Below, piece by piece: positions 1,509 to 12,817 of a stretch of 64,000 nt of DNA. The position numbers were made by a program, and so were the translations under genes. The notes under the pieces were generated by a model. It worked only from the letters and a program-made list of their open reading frames with translations, was not told the DNA's origin and did no database searches. Position 1 is the stretch's first letter. Each line of letters starts with the position of its first letter. The stretch covers positions 62,001 to 126,000 of IMG/VR virus record IMGVR_UViG_3300044568_003163. One strand, written 5' to 3'.

Positions 1509-1534
1509 AAAAGCTCAATCTTACGATTAAGCTT
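1509..1534 (-). terminator. intrinsic terminator ending the tRNA array
   Basis: AAAGCTTAATC-GTAA-GATTGAGCTTTT hairpin with U tail on the minus strand. Confidence 0.7.
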
Positions 1535-1592
1535 TATCGAAGGTATATTAGGCCATACCAATAACCAGGACCTTTTCCCTAGGGAAATGTCG

Positions 1593-3285: not shown

Positions 3286-3363
3286 TGGGGTGGAAGACGG
3301 GACTCGAACCCGCGATCTCTAGAACCACAATCTAGCGCTTTAACCAACTAAGCTACAACCACC
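3286..3363 (-). tRNA. tRNA-His(GTG)
   Basis: CTAGA-TTGTGGT-TCTAG; G-1; CCA encoded. Confidence 0.9.
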
Positions 3364-3374
3364 ATGTATAAAAC

Positions 3375-3409
3375 AAAAAAGCTCGATTCATTTGATAGAA
3401 CCGAGCTTT
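3375..3409 (-). terminator. attenuator terminator 1
   Basis: AAAGCTCGGTTC...GAATCGAGCTTTTTT just upstream of tRNA-His. Confidence 0.85.
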
Positions 3410-3443
3410 GCAATTTAGTATTTATATTTTCACATAAGAACCA

Positions 3444-3518
3444 TCACACTTCGGTACTGTTTTCAGATCTTGTTAGATGCTGAAGCGACGTTAACGATAA
3501 TGTACTTGAAGTTCTCAT
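3444..3518 (-). CDS. putative attenuator leader peptide 1 (MRTSSTLSLTSLQHLTRSENSTEV)
   Basis: Lies between promoter and terminator; codons 2-18 are only R/T/S/L/Q/H. Confidence 0.75.
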   Translation of the reverse strand: MRTSSTLSLTSLQHLTRSENSTEV

Positions 3519-3550
3519 TGTTTGTAATTTATTATTTTTTATATATACTG

Positions 3551-3578
3551 TTATATGTCTAAAATTGCTGAGAGTTTC
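3551..3578 (-). promoter_or_regulatory. class II promoter GAAAC-N16-CATATAA
   Basis: Same motif and spacer recur at 6140, 9470, 44907 and 56117. Confidence 0.7.
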
Positions 3579-3603
3579 AAAAAACTTTCAATTTATTTTC
3601 TAG

Positions 3604-3700
3604 TGAAGACAATTGGGATCGAACCAATGGCACGCCTATGTTCCTTATCGATCATACCAATAAGTACTGAAGGTTGCTCTACCAACTGAGCTATATCTTC
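3604..3700 (-). ncRNA. tRNA-like RNA with expanded anticodon domain
   Basis: Intact acceptor, D and T arms; no 7-nt anticodon loop. Confidence 0.65.
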
Positions 3701-3705
3701 ATTTG

Positions 3706-3776
3706 TAGCGGATTAAGGACTCGAACCTCGCCATTGGGTTATGAGCCCGATATGCTACCAATTACACTAAACCGCA
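3706..3776 (-). tRNA. tRNA-Met(CAT), initiator-like, divergent
   Basis: GGG-CTCATAA-CCC; 1:72 mismatch. Confidence 0.65.
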
Positions 3777-3917
3777 AGATGACCTTAAGGATTCGAACCT
3801 TTAACTTGTTTCCTCTTTTAGTTTTGCAAACCTACTCAATTCTACCGTGCCCAATACACTATTGCCAATCGTCATTTTCGAACATGACAGCCTTAAGTTA
3901 ATTACTCTTAAGATTTG

Positions 3918-3989
3918 TAGTCCCACCGGGAATCGAACCCGACTTTTCAGGATGAAAACCTGATGACCTAACCGATAGTCGATAGGACC
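3918..3989 (-). tRNA. tRNA-Glu(TTC)
   Basis: TCAGG-TTTTCAT-CCTGA. Confidence 0.9.
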
Positions 3990-4077
3990 AATTAAGTTAT
4001 ATCAAATTCTCCCGCAGAGATACCGACCCATTGCTGAGCCAGAGAGGACTTGAACCTCTGATTCTCAATAACTAATT
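3990..4077 (-). ncRNA. circularly permuted tRNA-like RNA (YrlA-type topology)
   Basis: Order is stem, T arm, GCAA-capped acceptor-like stem, TA, D-like arm, stem. Confidence 0.55.
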
Positions 4078-4173
4078 TAAAAGAATTAAAGAGTAGAGCT
4101 CTTCAACGATTTCGGCATTTCAGCTGGATCTTTATGCCAACTTCCTAATCCTTAGTCCGTTTAATTCTTGTAG

Positions 4174-4247
4174 TATTATGTACGGGACTCGAACCCGTGT
4201 TATCAACGTGAAAGGCTGACGTCCTAGACCAACTAGACGAACATAAC
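4174..4247 (-). tRNA. tRNA-Glu(TTC)
   Basis: TCAGC-CTTTCAC-GTTGA. Confidence 0.85.
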
Positions 4248-4251
4248 ATTT

Positions 4252-4464
4252 TTAAGCTTCTTCAGAGACAAGTCCTAAAACTTCTTCTCTGTAAATTTTA
4301 TTCAATTCACTTACTTCAATATCGATATTCGTTTGTGGATATCGGTGAAGTAAAATCTTAACTAATCTGATTCGTTTCTCAGCCAAATCTTGATTAAAGT
4401 CCATTTCAATCATTGCATCACTTAAATGAGATTGAATTGCGATTGATAATTTGATAGTTTCCAT
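4252..4464 (-). CDS. hypothetical protein
   Basis: ORF directly after a class I promoter. Confidence 0.65.
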   Translation of the reverse strand: METIKLSIAIQSHLSDAMIEMDFNQDLAEKRIRLVKILLHRYPQTNIDIEVSELNKIYREEVLGLVSEEA

Positions 4465-4488
4465 AATGTGATTGTTTAATTTTAATAA

Positions 4489-4546
4489 GTAAAACTAATC
4501 AATTTAATTGACATATGGAAATTATTTTTCAAAAAGTTATTAACAA
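4489..4546 (-). promoter_or_regulatory. class I promoter cassette
   Basis: Box at 4536; offset 46. Confidence 0.65.
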
Positions 4547-4558
4547 TTTTAAAATAAA

Positions 4559-4732
4559 AAGTTTGTCACCGGCACAGATTGGTGAATACCCAAGTACAAC
4601 CGAATGTACCCGATACCTTACTAACAAAATGAACGGATCTGTGTTTCCTGTATGCGGCAAGTGACCTCCTTCCTTGCTTGTGTTTCCGTATCGATGTGTG
4701 CGGCAACATACCATTTTGAGTTCAACAAACTT
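4559..4732 (-). ncRNA. candidate ~175-nt structured ncRNA
   Basis: AAGTTTGT/ACAAACTT closing stem; GC-richer than flanks; follows tRNA-fMet. Confidence 0.4.
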
Positions 4733-4736
4733 CTTG

Positions 4737-4809
4737 TAGCGGGAGCAGGACTCGAACCTGCGACCTTTGGGTTATGAGCCCACTGAGCTACCAACTGCTC
4801 TATCCCGCA
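4737..4809 (-). tRNA. tRNA-fMet(CAT)
   Basis: GGG-CTCATAA-CCC; unpaired 1:72. Confidence 0.85.
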
Positions 4810-4835
4810 ATATACCTTTTAAGTAGAACCATCAA

Positions 4836-5027
4836 CTATATTTCTGTTGATGATTCTAATTGTCTTAATTTTAAACCTTCTTCAATTGTTTGAATGATGT
4901 CCTCAATTATTTGAGCTCGCGTAACATCAAAGTTACCATTCATTCCATTCAAATCTTTTGCATCAATTGCAATAGATCCTACTGACTTACCGTCTTTCTG
5001 TAATTCAATTACTAATGTATCAAACAT
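4836..5027 (-). CDS. hypothetical protein
   Basis: ORF track; class II-like promoter at 5050-5077. Confidence 0.6.
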   Translation of the reverse strand: MFDTLVIELQKDGKSVGSIAIDAKDLNGMNGNFDVTRAQIIEDIIQTIEEGLKLRQLESSTEI

Positions 5028-5092
5028 AATATAGCTTTTTATTTAATTGTTTTATGCAATTTGAAATAAATTGTTTCTCTTCTTATTAACAT

Positions 5093-5551
5093 CTATCTAC
5101 AGATTCTATCAGCTACATATGAAGCCGAGCATGCATCTGGTTTACATCTAGCGTTATAACCTAATGATTCTACATAACCTAAAGCAGAACGCAGAATTGA
5201 ATTAGATTGATACTTAGGGTCTGGATTAAAATCCAAATCAATAAATGCAGGTTTTTCAATATCATTAGCTTCAAGCCATTGAGCTAATTCAACTGAATCT
5301 TCTACCTCTTTCCAAAGTCTAGTAAATCTATCTAAGATTCTAGGAATTGATTTACGAGAGTAGATAACGTGACCTCCTCGATTACCGTAATGTAAAACAA
5401 TAACCATTGCGTAAATTGTATTTCTTCCAATATTTTGCGAATCTGAACCGATATACATTTTGATGTCTTTACCAGTTGCGAGTTTGTCCTTTAAATAAGG
5501 AATTAAGTCAATTACTTGACCGTTTGTTAACGATTGAAATTTCCGGTCCAT
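5093..5551 (-). CDS. RNase H-like protein, YkuK/DUF458 family
   Basis: IGSDSQ, RLWKEVEDS, IDLDFN and ADR motifs. Confidence 0.8.
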   Translation of the reverse strand: MDRKFQSLTNGQVIDLIPYLKDKLATGKDIKMYIGSDSQNIGRNTIYAMVIVLHYGNRGGHVIYSRKSIPRILDRFTRLWKEVEDSVELAQWLEANDIEKPAFIDLDFNPDPKYQSNSILRSALGYVESLGYNARCKPDACSASYVADRICR

Positions 5552-5571
5552 GATTATTAAATTTATGTTAG

Positions 5572-5642
5572 AGGCGAGTATAGGATTCGAACCTATGTAA
5601 CTGATTTTGCAGACCAGCGCCTAACCGCTCGGCCAACTCGCC
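5572..5642 (-). tRNA. tRNA-Cys(GCA)
   Basis: CTGGT-CTGCAAA-ATCAG; U73. Confidence 0.9.
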
Positions 5643-5647
5643 ATTTG

Positions 5648-5719
5648 TGACTCTAGAGAGACTCGAACTCCCATCTCCTGATCCGTAGTCAAGTGTTCTA
5701 TCCATTGAACTATAGAGCC
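5648..5719 (-). tRNA. tRNA-Arg(ACG)
   Basis: CTTGA-CTACGGA-TCAGG. Confidence 0.9.
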
Positions 5720-5728
5720 ATTATTTTG

Positions 5729-5801
5729 TCGGGAAGACAGGACTCGAACCTGCGGCCTCATGCTCCCAAAGCACGCGATCTACCAACTGATCTACTTCCC
5801 G
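5729..5801 (-). tRNA. tRNA-Pro(TGG)
   Basis: CGTGC-TTTGGGA-GCATG. Confidence 0.9.
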
Positions 5802-5848
5802 TGGCAGAGAGGCTTTTGAAGTGCCCTGCTAGTTCATCTTTTAATTTG

Positions 5849-5922
5849 TCGAATAGACAGGAATCGAACCTGCTAACTGATACGTCCAAGGTACCCGTGC
5901 TTAAAACCTTAGTCACTACTCG
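5849..5922 (-). tRNA. tRNA-Pro(TGG), divergent
   Basis: GGTAC-CTTGGAC-GTATC; atypical D arm. Confidence 0.7.
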
Positions 5923-5931
5923 TTTAAAAAC

Positions 5932-5967
5932 AAAAAAGCCTGAATCGGTTGAATGATTCAGGCTTTT
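5932..5967 (-). terminator. attenuator terminator 2
   Basis: AAAAGCCTGAATC...GATTCAGGCTTTTTT just upstream of tRNA-Pro. Confidence 0.85.
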
Positions 5968-5988
5968 ATATGATGATGTTACTTTATA

Positions 5989-6084
5989 TCATTCAAAAAC
6001 CTGCATACCATTCTCACATGCCTCAGGACGAGGGCATTCTACTGTTAACTGCGATGTTGTTAGTATGTGTGAAAGTATTAACAT
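5989..6084 (-). CDS. putative attenuator leader peptide 2 (MLILSHILTTSQLTVECPRPEACENGMQVFE)
   Basis: Lies between promoter and terminator; E-C-P-R-P-E-A-C-E core. Confidence 0.7.
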   Translation of the reverse strand: MLILSHILTTSQLTVECPRPEACENGMQVFE

Positions 6085-6139
6085 TTTAATTTTTATTAGC
6101 AAAGACTCTTTATCTTTGTTTAGTTCTTTTATATATCTT

Positions 6140-6167
6140 TTATATGTTCCGTTATTGCGGAAGTTTC
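6140..6167 (-). promoter_or_regulatory. class II promoter GAAAC-N16-CATATAA
   Basis: Exact motif. Confidence 0.7.
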
Positions 6168-6316
6168 AAAATTATTTTATTCTTTTCTATTTGTGCTTTA
6201 ATCTTAGCAATCTTTTCTGGACTAGGATTTCTATCTATCGTATACGAAACACCCATCTTGTCCATGTAATCGTAAAGAAGTTGCATATCTTCATTAGTAG
6301 TTTTAGTTGTTTTCAT
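6152..6316 (-). CDS. 54-aa hypothetical protein (not in ORF track)
   Basis: MKTTKTTNEDMQLLYDYMDKMGVSYTIDRNPSPEKIAKIK... Confidence 0.55.
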   Translation of the reverse strand: MKTTKTTNEDMQLLYDYMDKMGVSYTIDRNPSPEKIAKIKAQIEKNKIILKLPQ

Positions 6317-6624: not shown

Positions 6625-6630
6625 TTATTG

Positions 6631-6741
6631 CAGGAATGTAAGGAATCGAACCTTAGCATCTTCCGAGACAGGGAGTAATTTATGCAGAATACAATCTTCG
6701 CAGATTGAGTTTTAAGCGTGCTACCATTACACCACATTCCT
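6631..6741 (-). ncRNA. tRNA-like RNA with ~60-nt replacement of the anticodon domain
   Basis: Perfect acceptor, D and T arms; internal CAATCT-GCGA-AGATTG hairpin. Confidence 0.7.
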
Positions 6742-7359: not shown

Positions 7360-7433
7360 TAGCGAGGACCGGGATCGAACCGGCGACCTTTGGTTTATGA
7401 ATCCAATGTTACTACCAACTGAACTACCTCGCC
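7360..7433 (-). tRNA. tRNA-Met(CAT), elongator
   Basis: Loop TTCATAA; GGCG acceptor. Confidence 0.8.
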
Positions 7434-9195: not shown

Positions 9196-9268
9196 TGGTA
9201 AGGGACGGGATCGAACCGTCATCATCGGATTTTCAGTCCGCTGCATAGACCAACTTTGCTACCTCACC
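9196..9268 (-). tRNA. tRNA-Phe(GAA)
   Basis: CGGA-CTGAAAA-TCCG. Confidence 0.9.
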
Positions 9269-9274
9269 AAAAAC

Positions 9275-9308
9275 AAAAAACCTCTGAATTTTTGAAGATT
9301 CAGAGGTT
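9275..9308 (-). terminator. attenuator terminator 3
   Basis: AACCTCTGAAT...ATTCAGAGGTTTTTT just upstream of tRNA-Phe. Confidence 0.85.
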
Positions 9309-9335
9309 AAAGTATATTGTATTAAAATATCGATA

Positions 9336-9434
9336 CTACATCCGAATCACATTGCTATCCACATAATCATTCCCGGCAAACTTAATCGCCCAGTCAAAAT
9401 TCATGTTAATATTTATGTTAGTAGTAGGTATCAT
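9336..9434 (-). CDS. putative attenuator leader peptide 3 (MIPTTNININMNFDWAIKFAGNDYVDSNVIRM)
   Basis: Lies between promoter and terminator; composition matches the downstream tRNA block. Confidence 0.75.
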   Translation of the reverse strand: MIPTTNININMNFDWAIKFAGNDYVDSNVIRM

Positions 9435-9469
9435 TTTATTGATGTTTTAATATTGTTTTATATATACTG

Positions 9470-9497
9470 TTATATGTTCTAAATTTCAAAAAGTTTC
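9470..9497 (-). promoter_or_regulatory. class II promoter GAAAC-N16-CATATAA
   Basis: Exact motif. Confidence 0.7.
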
Positions 9498-9526
9498 AAC
9501 TTATTTTTATATTATTTTAATCTTAG

Positions 9527-10104: not shown

Positions 10105-11421
10105 TTAACCTTCAGCTTCTTCGGTATCAATTACTCCAGAATCTTTTACGATTCCTTCAAGTACTTTGAATTCGAAAGACTTGAATTTGAATGTTTTGTT
10201 TACCAAACCACCTTCAATTCTTACACAAACTCCTTCTTTGATATGTCTAGTATCTAAGATAGATGGACCAGTTCCGAATGTTTCGACGGTGTTGCTGAAA
10301 TATTCTCGCAAATCTCTATCATCGAATTTATGAGTGATTGCTTCTAATTCGTTTAAGGTTATCGTAGCAACATGTGGTACAGTTTTTACACCTAATTCAT
10401 TACAACGTTTTACAACATCATTCCAAGCATAATCGATAGATTGACCATCTTCATTAGCAAATGTCATACGGTAAACATAAACCTCAGATTGAGTAGGTTC
10501 ACAACCATAAGAATAAGCCATAGACTTACCGTATTGTTTCGTAAACTCTTTATCACCCATTTTGGTTGTATCAACAGATGGCATAATTGCAGCTCCTGTA
10601 GATTCGTAACCTACAATTTCAAAATAAACGGTTTCACCTTTTCTTAAGTTACCTTTGAATAAGTTCATTGCTTTATCTCGGATGGTTGGGTCATGGAATT
10701 GATTTGCGGATTTTGATTCTCCTAAAACAACTCTACGAGTACCATTCAAATAAGCCCATTCTTTGTCGTTGATAGCTAATCCAAATTTAGTAACAAGTTT
10801 TTCTAACCAACCTAATTCTCTAGTCATTTGAACGTGACCAATACGACCTGAAGTACCGTGAAGTTTTTCAGTAATAATGATGTGTTGACCCTTTTCAAAT
10901 TCGTGGATACTCTTACCAAAGTGTCCGGTATCAAAATGTTCTTTGAACATTACAGAAGATCTAGAAACTCGGGTTTTCTTACCTTGATTTTCTCTAGCAA
11001 TTTTAGCCGTATTTGGATTTACATATTTGTTACAGATAGGTACACCTTTCCATTCGTCAAATTCAAATCCTTCTACATCTAAACCAGTTACCATAATGAA
11101 TCCAAAGTAATGTAATGGAACCCAGAAACCATCAGAGATTTCACCTCTAAATTTTTGAGCTCTTACTCTTCGGTTTGCATCGAACATTCCACCTTTCTCA
11201 TCTTTTCTAGCATTTAACTCGGCATCACGATAAAGGTTGTTTGCTTTACAGAACTCATCGGATAACTGACCATCAGATGGAAAGTAAACTCCTAAATGTC
11301 CTTCTAAAGAATCTAAACCAATTACTACTTGATTACCGTGACAAGTTGCTAATTGAACTTTGTCTGCGTTAGGATGTGGTCTCACGTTTGTCAACCTAGT
11401 GACGATTGCATTGTATGCCAT
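10105..11421 (-). CDS. RNA ligase (DRB0094/Rnl2-like with N-terminal OB-like domain)
   Basis: HPNADK, TEKLHGTS adenylation motif, EGVCVR, FKFKS. Confidence 0.85.
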   Translation of the reverse strand: MAYNAIVTRLTNVRPHPNADKVQLATCHGNQVVIGLDSLEGHLGVYFPSDGQLSDEFCKANNLYRDAELNARKDEKGGMFDANRRVRAQKFRGEISDGFWVPLHYFGFIMVTGLDVEGFEFDEWKGVPICNKYVNPNTAKIARENQGKKTRVSRSSVMFKEHFDTGHFGKSIHEFEKGQHIIITEKLHGTSGRIGHVQMTRELGWLEKLVTKFGLAINDKEWAYLNGTRRVVLGESKSANQFHDPTIRDKAMNLFKGNLRKGETVYFEIVGYESTGAAIMPSVDTTKMGDKEFTKQYGKSMAYSYGCEPTQSEVYVYRMTFANEDGQSIDYAWNDVVKRCNELGVKTVPHVATITLNELEAITHKFDDRDLREYFSNTVETFGTGPSILDTRHIKEGVCVRIEGGLVNKTFKFKSFEFKVLEGIVKDSGVIDTEEAEG

Positions 11422-11507: not shown

Positions 11508-11618
11508 TAGTCAGAACAGGATTCGAACCTGTATGGTGTTACCTAGAGTACTCAATACAGAGCGGTAAATCGGTTACGAACCATTACTCTTAGCGTCTTC
11601 CAATTCCGCCACCTGACT
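11508..11618 (-). ncRNA. tRNA-like RNA (Leu-like D arm) with expanded anticodon domain
   Basis: Intact acceptor, D and T arms; AGAGTA/TACTCT stem encloses ~35 nt. Confidence 0.65.
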
Positions 11619-11634
11619 CGATAGAACTAGCCTA

Positions 11635-11985
11635 TCATGATTGTGTAGATTTAATGTACACAATTATTCCAATGATTGAAAGAAAGCACAATGCTAATAC
11701 TGTTATTGCAGGTAAATAATCTTCTTTCTCTCTCCAAATTTTGTAATTATATCGAGGTTCGTTCTGCTTCCACGAATGGTCTTCAGACTTCTCAGACTTA
11801 ACATATTTTTTGTTTAGTTTTTTTAGGGATTTCCTAATTTCCTTTTTACATGGTTCAGCACCACAACAATAAAAAAATGATATATCTGTTTCGCTTATCA
11901 GCTTAGTAGTAGCTTCTTCCTCGCAACAATAACAATAATTTGGTTTCATATTAATACTCTTTAATGAGTACGGTACCATCTCCAT
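11635..11985 (-). CDS. Cys-rich protein with C-terminal TM
   Basis: CxCC and CCxxxxC motifs, hydrophobic tail; true start probably near 11949. Confidence 0.55.
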   Translation of the reverse strand: MEMVPYSLKSINMKPNYCYCCEEEATTKLISETDISFFYCCGAEPCKKEIRKSLKKLNKKYVKSEKSEDHSWKQNEPRYNYKIWREKEDYLPAITVLALCFLSIIGIIVYIKSTQS

Positions 11986-12817
11986 GCTCTAAACAGTCAA
12001 CGCAAAAGATAGTGTCTTTTACTTCTGGCCATCTACCAGCAGTCGGTTCAGTATCGTATTCAGTTACTTTGTGATGGGGTGTATGTCCGATTACTTGGTC
12101 ATAACCTTCTAATGCATCCCATCTTAATCTTCTCGGTCTAATCCAAACAGGACCTGCAAATTCTGAATATCCACCAGAATCTCCATCTACGTTAAATAAA
12201 ATATTTAAACGATATTGCCAAGCTTTATTGATAATCTCATCCGGCCTAAGATTCCAATCTCCTTCAAAATCTGCTTTGAATCGGAAACCGTCTCTTTTAA
12301 CCGTTGCATGCAATTGGCGTAACCAACCATGAGTTACTCCAGCATGAGTCCATAAAGTTCGCTTTAACCTACCATCGATTTCTCTTTCATGATAATATGC
12401 GAAAGTAAATTTGTCGATGTTTTTAGTAAACAACTCTTGAAAATCAAATTTCATTTCAGGTCGATAACCTGAACAGATTTGATCGGCTACAATATATTGA
12501 ATATCGTGATTTCCTAAAAGCAAGACTATTTTGTCTGGATATTCGGTTTTTAAATGTATGATTTCCTCTAGATTTAATTTCATCTCTAGGTTTTGTACAT
12601 CAAATGAATCTACGTAATCTCCAACGAAAACGATTTTATCCATTTCGTTAAAAATAGGATAGGTGTCTTCAAACGCTTCTTTTGCTCCGTTATCTACTTC
12701 CTGTCTCCAGCTATTATAGTCCGTTAGAGAGCCGAATAACACAGTCTTCCAGGTATTTCTTCCGTGGATATCTCCGATAGACATGATTTTCATTGTAGTT
12801 TTCATTTTATGGTTCAT
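11951..12817 (-). CDS. calcineurin-like metallophosphoesterase
   Basis: GDIHG, GDYVD, GNHD, THAG and GHT motifs. Confidence 0.9.
   Translation of the reverse strand: MNHKMKTTMKIMSIGDIHGRNTWKTVLFGSLTDYNSWRQEVDNGAKEAFEDTYPIFNEMDKIVFVGDYVDSFDVQNLEMKLNLEEIIHLKTEYPDKIVLLLGNHDIQYIVADQICSGYRPEMKFDFQELFTKNIDKFTFAYYHEREIDGRLKRTLWTHAGVTHGWLRQLHATVKRDGFRFKADFEGDWNLRPDEIINKAWQYRLNILFNVDGDSGGYSEFAGPVWIRPRRLRWDALEGYDQVIGHTPHHKVTEYDTEPTAGRWPEVKDTIFCVDCLEHGDGTVLIKEY

Follow-up and report, generated by a model that had tools for sequence, protein, structure and literature searches.

The window analysed here, a stretch of 64,000 nucleotides, corresponds to bases 62001-126000 of a 294-kb IMG/VR phage record with a G+C content of 33%, and similar sequences were found in lake and freshwater samples. 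About 37 tRNA genes were found in the window, all of them on the minus strand and spanning positions 9268-1592. Embedded in this array are ORFs for a YqeY-like protein and an RNaseH-like PF04308 protein, as well as three small ORFs without a family match. When the region was searched for DNA similarity against a phage collection, the only matches were to the tRNA genes of unrelated phages.

Block B of the array (3604-5922, minus strand) contains tRNA genes for Pro, Pro, Arg(acg) and Cys, the RNaseH-like ORF, two small ORFs, tRNA genes for Met, Glu, Glu and Met, and an atypical tRNA-like gene. Block C, after the second terminator, contains His, Ser, Ser, Arg(tct), Gln, Gln, Thr(tgt), Thr(ggt) and three Leu tRNA genes. 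The tRNA-Thr(tgt) gene (2618-2691), which reads ACA and ACG codons, was missed by the default ARAGORN run and was found by Rfam and by a relaxed run. The array is closed by its fourth terminator (1510-1535, minus strand), located after tRNA-Leu(aag). Atypical tRNA-like genes, all on the minus strand, were found at 3604-3700 (Thr(ggt)-like, with an 8-nt insert), 6625-6740 (23-nt insert, missed by the default ARAGORN run), 11508-11618 (15-nt insert and a UUA anticodon, expected to decode UAA stop codons) and 2044-2116 (8-base anticodon loop).

The RNaseH-like PF04308 protein of block B is encoded at 5093-5551 (minus strand). Relatives of this protein are a regular companion of phage tRNA arrays, since 64 of the 80 IMG/VR loci that encode one (L002-L081) carry at least three tRNA genes on the same strand. 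Directly upstream of the array, genes for an RNA ligase (PF09414 plus a PHA02142 OB fold) and a calcineurin-like phosphoesterase are located at 10105-11421 and 11951-12817 (minus strand); it is conceivable that they form a tRNA repair pair, an inference that was not tested.

Three cassettes within the tRNA array

A cassette composed of the motif TTGAAAC, an AT-rich box, a small ORF and a strong terminator, followed by the first tRNA gene of a block, occurs three times in the array, in units here named A, B and C. The TTGAAAC motif, a -35-like element, lies exactly 16 nt ahead of the box in all three units. The box is conserved, 21-22 nt long and AT-rich, and its pattern has only three occurrences in the 294-kb genome, one per unit.

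In unit B, TTGAAAC (6163-6169, minus strand) overlaps the end of a 54-aa ORF without a family match (6316-6152, minus strand), which terminates within the motif. The box of unit B (6127-6147, minus strand) is one base shorter than those of units A and C. Its promoter function, as well as the transcription start, is inferred without direct data. A sigma-70 scan returned 48 matches against 41.8 +/- 6.9 in shuffled sequences; such matches were no commoner than expected and were therefore not used as promoter evidence. A search of IMG/VR for the box retrieved only members of this lineage and a single chance match, L083, which has no tRNAs.

The leader ORF of unit B (5989-6084, minus strand) starts with ATG 42 nt past the box and contains 31 codons and a TGA stop codon (5991-5989), which ends 21 nt ahead of the terminator; the encoded peptide is MLILSHILTTSQLTVECPRPEACENGMQVFE. 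Codons 16-24 form a core, ECPRPEACE (6013-6039, minus strand), encoded by GAA TGC CCT CGT CCT GAG GCA TGT GAG. The intrinsic terminator is a stem-loop (5934-5967, minus strand) with a stem of 13 bp and a loop of 8 nt, a folding energy of -18.1 kcal/mol and a z-score of -6.76, followed in the sequence by a T-tract (5925-5933, minus strand). The tRNA-Pro gene starts at 5922, 11 nt past the terminator, and in each of the three units the first tRNA gene lies 10-15 nt past it. This distance leaves no room for a promoter, indicating that transcription of each block requires read-through of the terminator. No terminator was found between block A and unit B, so that terminator B also ends the block A transcript. 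That termination takes place at these sites is itself an inference.

Unit A (9270-9499, minus strand) contains TTGAAAC at 9499-9493, the box at 9477-9456, the leader ORF at 9434-9336, an antiterminator at 9348-9297 and the terminator at 9308-9279, after which tRNA-Phe starts at 9268. Unit C (3368-3580, minus strand) contains TTGAAAC at 3580-3574, the box at 3558-3537, the leader ORF at 3518-3444, an alternative hairpin at 3460-3394 and the terminator at 3409-3378, with tRNA-His at 3362.

Translation of the leaders is inferred. A Shine-Dalgarno-like motif precedes only 4.7% of the 211 long ORFs, and genes start in A-rich sequence, so that the absence of a ribosome-binding site before small ORFs is normal in this genome. 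The A-rich start contexts of the leader ORFs resemble those of real genes of this phage, and this likeness, together with the conservation of the reading frame within families (see below), provides indirect support for leader translation. For leader B itself, a back-translated pattern of the ECPRPEACE core was searched in IMG/VR and matched only a near-identical contig; no diverged orthologue was found, so the conservation of leader B cannot be judged. In metatranscriptomes, 5-8% of the sampled words were present in three runs, and the contigs were mostly tRNAs of other organisms. Two low-depth pieces of the X1 metatranscriptome (5848-5995 and 5969-6218) extend over the terminator and the box of unit B, and could not be assigned to RNA or DNA.

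Mutually exclusive hairpins in unit B

A second hairpin of unit B (5951-6013, minus strand) has the features of an antiterminator. It contains 22 bp, with a folding energy of -19.0 kcal/mol and a z-score of -4.87, and none of 200 shuffled sequences folded as well. Its 5' strand is formed by codons 24-31 and the stop codon of the leader, and its 3' strand takes in the 5' arm of the terminator. The antiterminator and the terminator have positions 5967-5951 in common and are mutually exclusive, with similar stability. The duplex between the 3' end of leader B and the 5' arm of the terminator has an energy of -13.3 kcal/mol, against -7.9 +/- 1.9 in shuffled sequences (p 0.006).

Unit B had previously been described by a sequence-only reading, all of whose statements about its sequence proved correct; the observation is confirmed, and the elements are present at the positions given for them. 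The ECPRPEACE core held, as codons 16-24 at 6039-6013. The contrast drawn between Arg codons also held, with CGT in leader B, which precedes tRNA-Arg(acg), and AGA, used twice in leader C, ahead of tRNA-Arg(tct). The claim that CAGGTTTTT (6003-5995) pairs with AAAAGCCTG (5967-5959) was confirmed as 9 bp including one G-U pair. This pairing is only a part of the structure, being the centre of a much longer antiterminator hairpin, with AAAAGCCTG as the start of the terminator stem.

At equilibrium, the full-length leader RNA always folded into the terminator, whether or not a ribosome was modelled. A perfect hairpin such as this terminator gives that outcome in any case, so that equilibrium folding of the full-length RNA is uninformative on kinetics; the attenuation model rests on co-transcriptional kinetics. 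The effect of a ribosome was therefore modelled on RNA cut before the 3' arm of the terminator, with the ribosome footprint masked codon by codon. In this cut-RNA model, the 5' arm of terminator B was paired with a probability of 0.72-0.92 when A-site codons 1-23 were occupied, falling to 0.61 at codon 24, 0.33 at codon 25 and 0.07-0.14 with the ribosome at codons 27-32. The model thus predicts that a ribosome stalled up to about codon 23, which includes ECPRPEAC, leaves the antiterminator largely free, and that a ribosome on the last 5-6 codons or the stop codon frees the terminator arm. The drop after codon 23 marks this position, approximately, as the last stall site sparing the antiterminator. 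Unit A behaved similarly, with arm pairing of 0.8 falling to 0.06. The antiterminator of unit C was the weakest of the three (-14.7 kcal/mol, z -2.45), with a duplex p of 0.43.

The core of leader B contains a hairpin of low stability (-7 kcal/mol, z -1.5) that did not compete with the antiterminator in the folding analysis, which found no clear anti-antiterminator (1:2-type) hairpin in unit B. Without such a hairpin, untranslated RNA would read through by default.

Codon content of the leaders and similar units in other phages

The codons of each leader were compared with those decodable by the tRNAs of each block, using as a null random windows of equal length from the long ORFs of the phage itself. 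For leader A, the fraction decodable by block A was 0.81, against 0.58 in the null (p 0.007), and for leader C the fraction decodable by block C was 0.83 against 0.27, a value reached by 0 of 30,000 windows (p < 3e-5). Leader B had been described as matching block B, a statement that had to be adjusted. With block B alone the fraction was 0.40, against a null of 0.18 (p 0.006), and with blocks B and C together it was 0.80 against 0.45 (p 0.0005), so that leader B fits the two blocks together and not block B alone. The remaining codons of leader B, about 20%, are not read by tRNAs of either block. Codons for block C in leader B could fit transcripts that run on toward unit C, as one possibility.

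Each leader is depleted for the blocks that do not lie behind it, as seen for block A with leader B (0.30 against 0.58) and leader C (0.09 against 0.58); leaders A and C match their own blocks only. Leu is encoded in leaders B and C by TTA, CTT and CTA, cognate to the three Leu tRNAs. The leaders of the three paralogous units partition amino acids as the tRNA blocks do.

The RNaseH-like protein of the array was used as an anchor to retrieve 80 related IMG/VR loci, 64 of them with tRNA arrays (65 including the window). A unit was called when a hairpin with a T-tract was located at most 60 nt from the first tRNA of a block and an ORF of 15-60 codons, ending 10-60 nt before the hairpin, showed complementarity to its 5' arm. 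At least one unit of this leader/terminator build was found in 21 of the 65 arrays (window included). These comprise at least 12 non-redundant units, at least nine of them independent units outside the phage of the window. With two cultured phages included, the build recurs in at least six phage lineages.

Terminators of different families show no sequence relationship, and each time the complementary segment was found in the 3' part of the unit's own leader ORF. Apart from unit B, 12 further units have an antiterminator arranged in this way against the terminator. The duplex between leader and terminator arm had a shuffle p of 0.05 or less in 11 of 15 units, made up of 12 from IMG/VR (Fisher combined p 3e-10) and three from cultured phages (p 0.024, p 0.026 and 0/500 shuffles). 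The leader ORF ends 20-36 nt ahead of the terminator stem in all units, a gap at which a terminating ribosome would be too far to block the terminator and near enough to mask the antiterminator. In some relatives, 28-32 nt separate the end of the antiterminator segment from the stop codon downstream, so that a ribosome terminating there would leave this segment uncovered.

The leader peptides are also unrelated between families, and have in common only their relation to the tRNAs downstream. The amino acids of the block are fully covered by the leader in 8 of 12 units, and one leader of 43 residues holds all 20 amino acids, with a block behind it that covers all 20. One phage (L052) carries two units whose leaders complement each other in composition, each of them in agreement with its own block. 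Seven units with restricted blocks gave a combined in-block p of 1e-11, and when leaders were permuted among 10 blocks, the observed mean z of 2.86 was reached in 0 of 200,000 permutations (permuted mean 0.2 +/- 0.57). Within families, the frame, length and stop position of the leader ORF are kept, and single-base indels were found only in the spacers.

A locus 95% identical to the window (L003, 4343-9517) lacks unit B and 17 tRNA genes (Val through Cys), with leaders A and C unchanged, which appears to reflect a recent deletion within the array. In variants of the L044 and L068 families, the leaders are constant and the blocks slightly different. L003 and the variants of the L044 and L068 families give no support for co-evolution of leader and block, and are mild evidence against tight tracking.

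In L007, the terminator of a long vWA-like gene (7389-7410) lies 10 nt before Ser, His, Arg and Cys tRNA genes without a leader ORF, indicating that some terminators ahead of phage tRNAs belong to no attenuator. Suppressor-type tRNAs were also present in related arrays, with a UUA anticodon in L004 (8615-8692), L044 and L068, and the 735-kb uncultured phage LR756501 contains two tRNAs with the anticodon CUA (L088, 20500-20650). These tRNAs hint at stop-codon reassignment in some of these phages.

The cultured Leptolyngbya phage Lbo-JY46 (unit at L087 6120-6247) encodes the leader MKITRQHTQFWFPTGTGLGML ahead of Pro, Thr, Phe, Gln and His tRNA genes. Its in-block fraction was 0.50 against 0.18 (p 0.0007), and its duplex, with -16.7 kcal/mol, was not equalled in 500 shuffles. 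A second leader of this phage is Leu-rich and precedes two Leu tRNA genes. In the cultured Pseudomonas phage Milchi (unit at L086 18377-18557), an ORF of 44 codons, whose annotation is hypothetical protein, is followed by tRNA genes for Arg, Phe, Gly, Tyr and others. TAnnTTTG, the Bacteroidota-type -7 promoter motif, precedes leaders in L052 (around 7400 and 11580) and in the Lbo-JY46 locus (around 5370 and 6100); its presence in Lbo-JY46 is curious, given the cyanobacterial host recorded for this phage.

A putative attenuator of phage tRNA genes

Unit B contains the short ORF, intrinsic terminator and antiterminator needed by a leader-peptide attenuator, with only the weak core hairpin in the place of a 1:2-type hairpin. 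It is likely that it works as a ribosome-mediated transcription attenuator that gates a phage tRNA block, a function that is inferred and rests on no experiment. This reading had been proposed before from the sequence, and is now supported by computation and by comparative evidence that was not available then.

In the proposed mechanism, transcription would start at the conserved box and enter the 31-codon leader. If translation proceeds fast to the stop codon, the ribosome would occupy or unfold codons 24-31, which make up the 5' strand of the antiterminator; with the antiterminator lost, the 13-bp terminator would form and RNA polymerase would halt 11 nt before tRNA-Pro. A shortage of a charged tRNA would make the ribosome stall early, and the antiterminator (6013-5951) would form first, sequestering the 5' arm of the terminator, and transcription would continue into the tRNA genes. 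Within the core, putative stall sites are the codons for Cys, Pro, Arg (CGT) and Glu; ahead of it, stalling could take place at those for Leu, Ser, His, Thr and Gln. Units A and C would gate their own blocks likewise, and the array would consist of three gated segments in series. Both stalling and the regulatory direction are inferred without direct data.

With a leader that samples codons read by the downstream tRNAs, the unit would act as a demand-driven negative feedback on tRNA supply. The phage would then make tRNAs only when ribosomes run short of them, an inference that we regard as likely. Candidate triggers of such a shortage could be host shut-off, a mismatch in codon usage, a limiting supply of amino acids, or defence nucleases that cleave host tRNAs.

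The alternative that survives best accepts that the hairpins alternate and that the ORF is translated, and places the input elsewhere, in translation capacity, infection timing, or a protein or RNA factor; a variant with the opposite logic has stalling favour termination, for instance through Rho or uncoupling. In favour of this explanation, the antiterminator is the predicted default structure of untranslated RNA, so that a general loss of translation would turn the unit on; no 1:2-type hairpin was found; and the box common to the three units could bind a common factor. Against it, a general sensor needs no leaders with amino-acid sets partitioned like the blocks, and ORF stops located 20-36 nt before the terminator fit masking of the antiterminator, not of the terminator. 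Taken jointly, these variants seem unlikely.

A second alternative regards the unit as a small gene of its own, either an sRNA of about 200 nt or the mRNA of a 31-residue micropeptide with its own terminator; expression of the tRNA blocks would rely on leaky read-through from upstream, with the codon match as a by-product. The unit does have its own promoter-like box and strong terminator, the Milchi leader is annotated as a hypothetical protein, and attenuator RNAs and leader peptides acting in trans are known (PMC6614838, PMC7298713). However, the peptides are unrelated between families and common only in relation to the downstream tRNAs, an sRNA gene needs neither an intact frame nor an in-frame segment complementary to its own terminator arm, and the 10-15 nt between terminator and first tRNA leave no space for another promoter. 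This explanation, as a whole, was considered very unlikely. An ordinary terminator or 5' processing hairpin with an accidental ORF and a chance match in an AT-rich genome is also very unlikely: short ORFs are common (136 ORFs of at least 25 aa in 12.5 kb) and L007 has a leaderless terminator of a long gene directly before tRNAs, but chance is opposed by the p-values combined over independent units (1e-11 in-block, 3e-10 for the duplex), the 0/200,000 permuted leaders, the frames kept within families and a box unique to the three units.

The attenuator reading of unit B can be compared with known systems. The trpL, hisL, leuL, thrL, ilvL and pheL attenuators share with it a short promoter-proximal ORF with regulatory codons, an intrinsic terminator ahead of the regulated genes, and an antiterminator that includes a terminator strand and is masked by a ribosome at the ORF end; in those operons stalling gives read-through, as proposed for unit B. 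The phage units differ in that the regulated genes encode tRNAs, not enzymes, and the regulatory codons of unit B correspond to downstream tRNA genes, not to a biosynthetic pathway. Whereas classical leaders contain runs of one or two codons, the phage leaders contain a mixed sample of 6 to 20 amino acids mirroring the tRNAs. The units are also phage-encoded and chained three times in one array, and the search for a clear 1:2 anti-antiterminator found none. No Rfam leader family scored up to its threshold, with Thr_leader at 25.2 bits against 55 and the trpB motif at 29.7 against 59, both matches being located over the terminator hairpin.

The E. coli pheST attenuator, with its pheM leader, places a component of the translation machinery under a leader rich in its own cognate codons. 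There the target is one synthetase and one amino acid, whereas the phage units would control the adaptor RNAs themselves, with many species at once. T-box riboswitches resemble the phage units in that the supply of a specific tRNA sets the choice between terminator and antiterminator before translation-related genes; they differ in binding uncharged tRNA directly, without need of an ORF, whereas the phage units have a leader ORF. T-box identity was rejected for unit B: a search of 5880-6200 at E <= 10 returned no match, and the window as a whole gave none at the gathering score.

The ermC and cat stalling-peptide leaders likewise use a ribosome stalled on a short leader to remodel the downstream RNA, but there a drug and a specific nascent peptide cause the stall, and many of these leaders act on translation, not termination. 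The tRNA regions of phage T5 likewise combine large arrays, interspersed small ORFs and several transcription units. In the annotated T5 record, promoters lie directly before tRNA groups and no terminator is annotated between promoter and tRNA genes, and the record lacks the build of the present units. Leader-peptide control of phage tRNA genes was not described in the literature searched, which was incompletely covered, so that its absence is unproven. Relative to the attenuators known to us, the tRNA-gene target, the multi-codon leader and the serial units in phage tRNA arrays are new.

A bolder reading, toward which the evidence tips only slightly, is that tRNA arrays are gated in many phages by 'codon-sampler' leader peptides coupled to a terminator/antiterminator switch; their short ORFs would hold, in many cases exhaustively (as many as 20 amino acids in 43 residues), codons read by the tRNAs encoded downstream. 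To a similarly modest degree, we favour the view that these units form an unrecognised class of attenuator, gauging decoding capacity per tRNA species and inducing replacement tRNAs. The presence of the design in two cultured phages makes direct testing possible.

The usual framework for phage tRNA genes is codon usage or escape from tRNA-targeting defences, and the control of their expression is largely unknown. If the proposed mechanism is true, a tRNA-supply switch would explain the strong terminators located directly ahead of tRNA blocks. The amino-acid content of a tiny ORF would be predictable from the neighbouring tRNA genes, which would aid the annotation of metagenomic phages, and the units would provide natural compact parts for sensing tRNA availability. 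Attenuation would no longer be confined to single amino acids and would include a multiplexed sensor for as many as 20 decoding activities, and phages would gain a homeostat for the translation apparatus.
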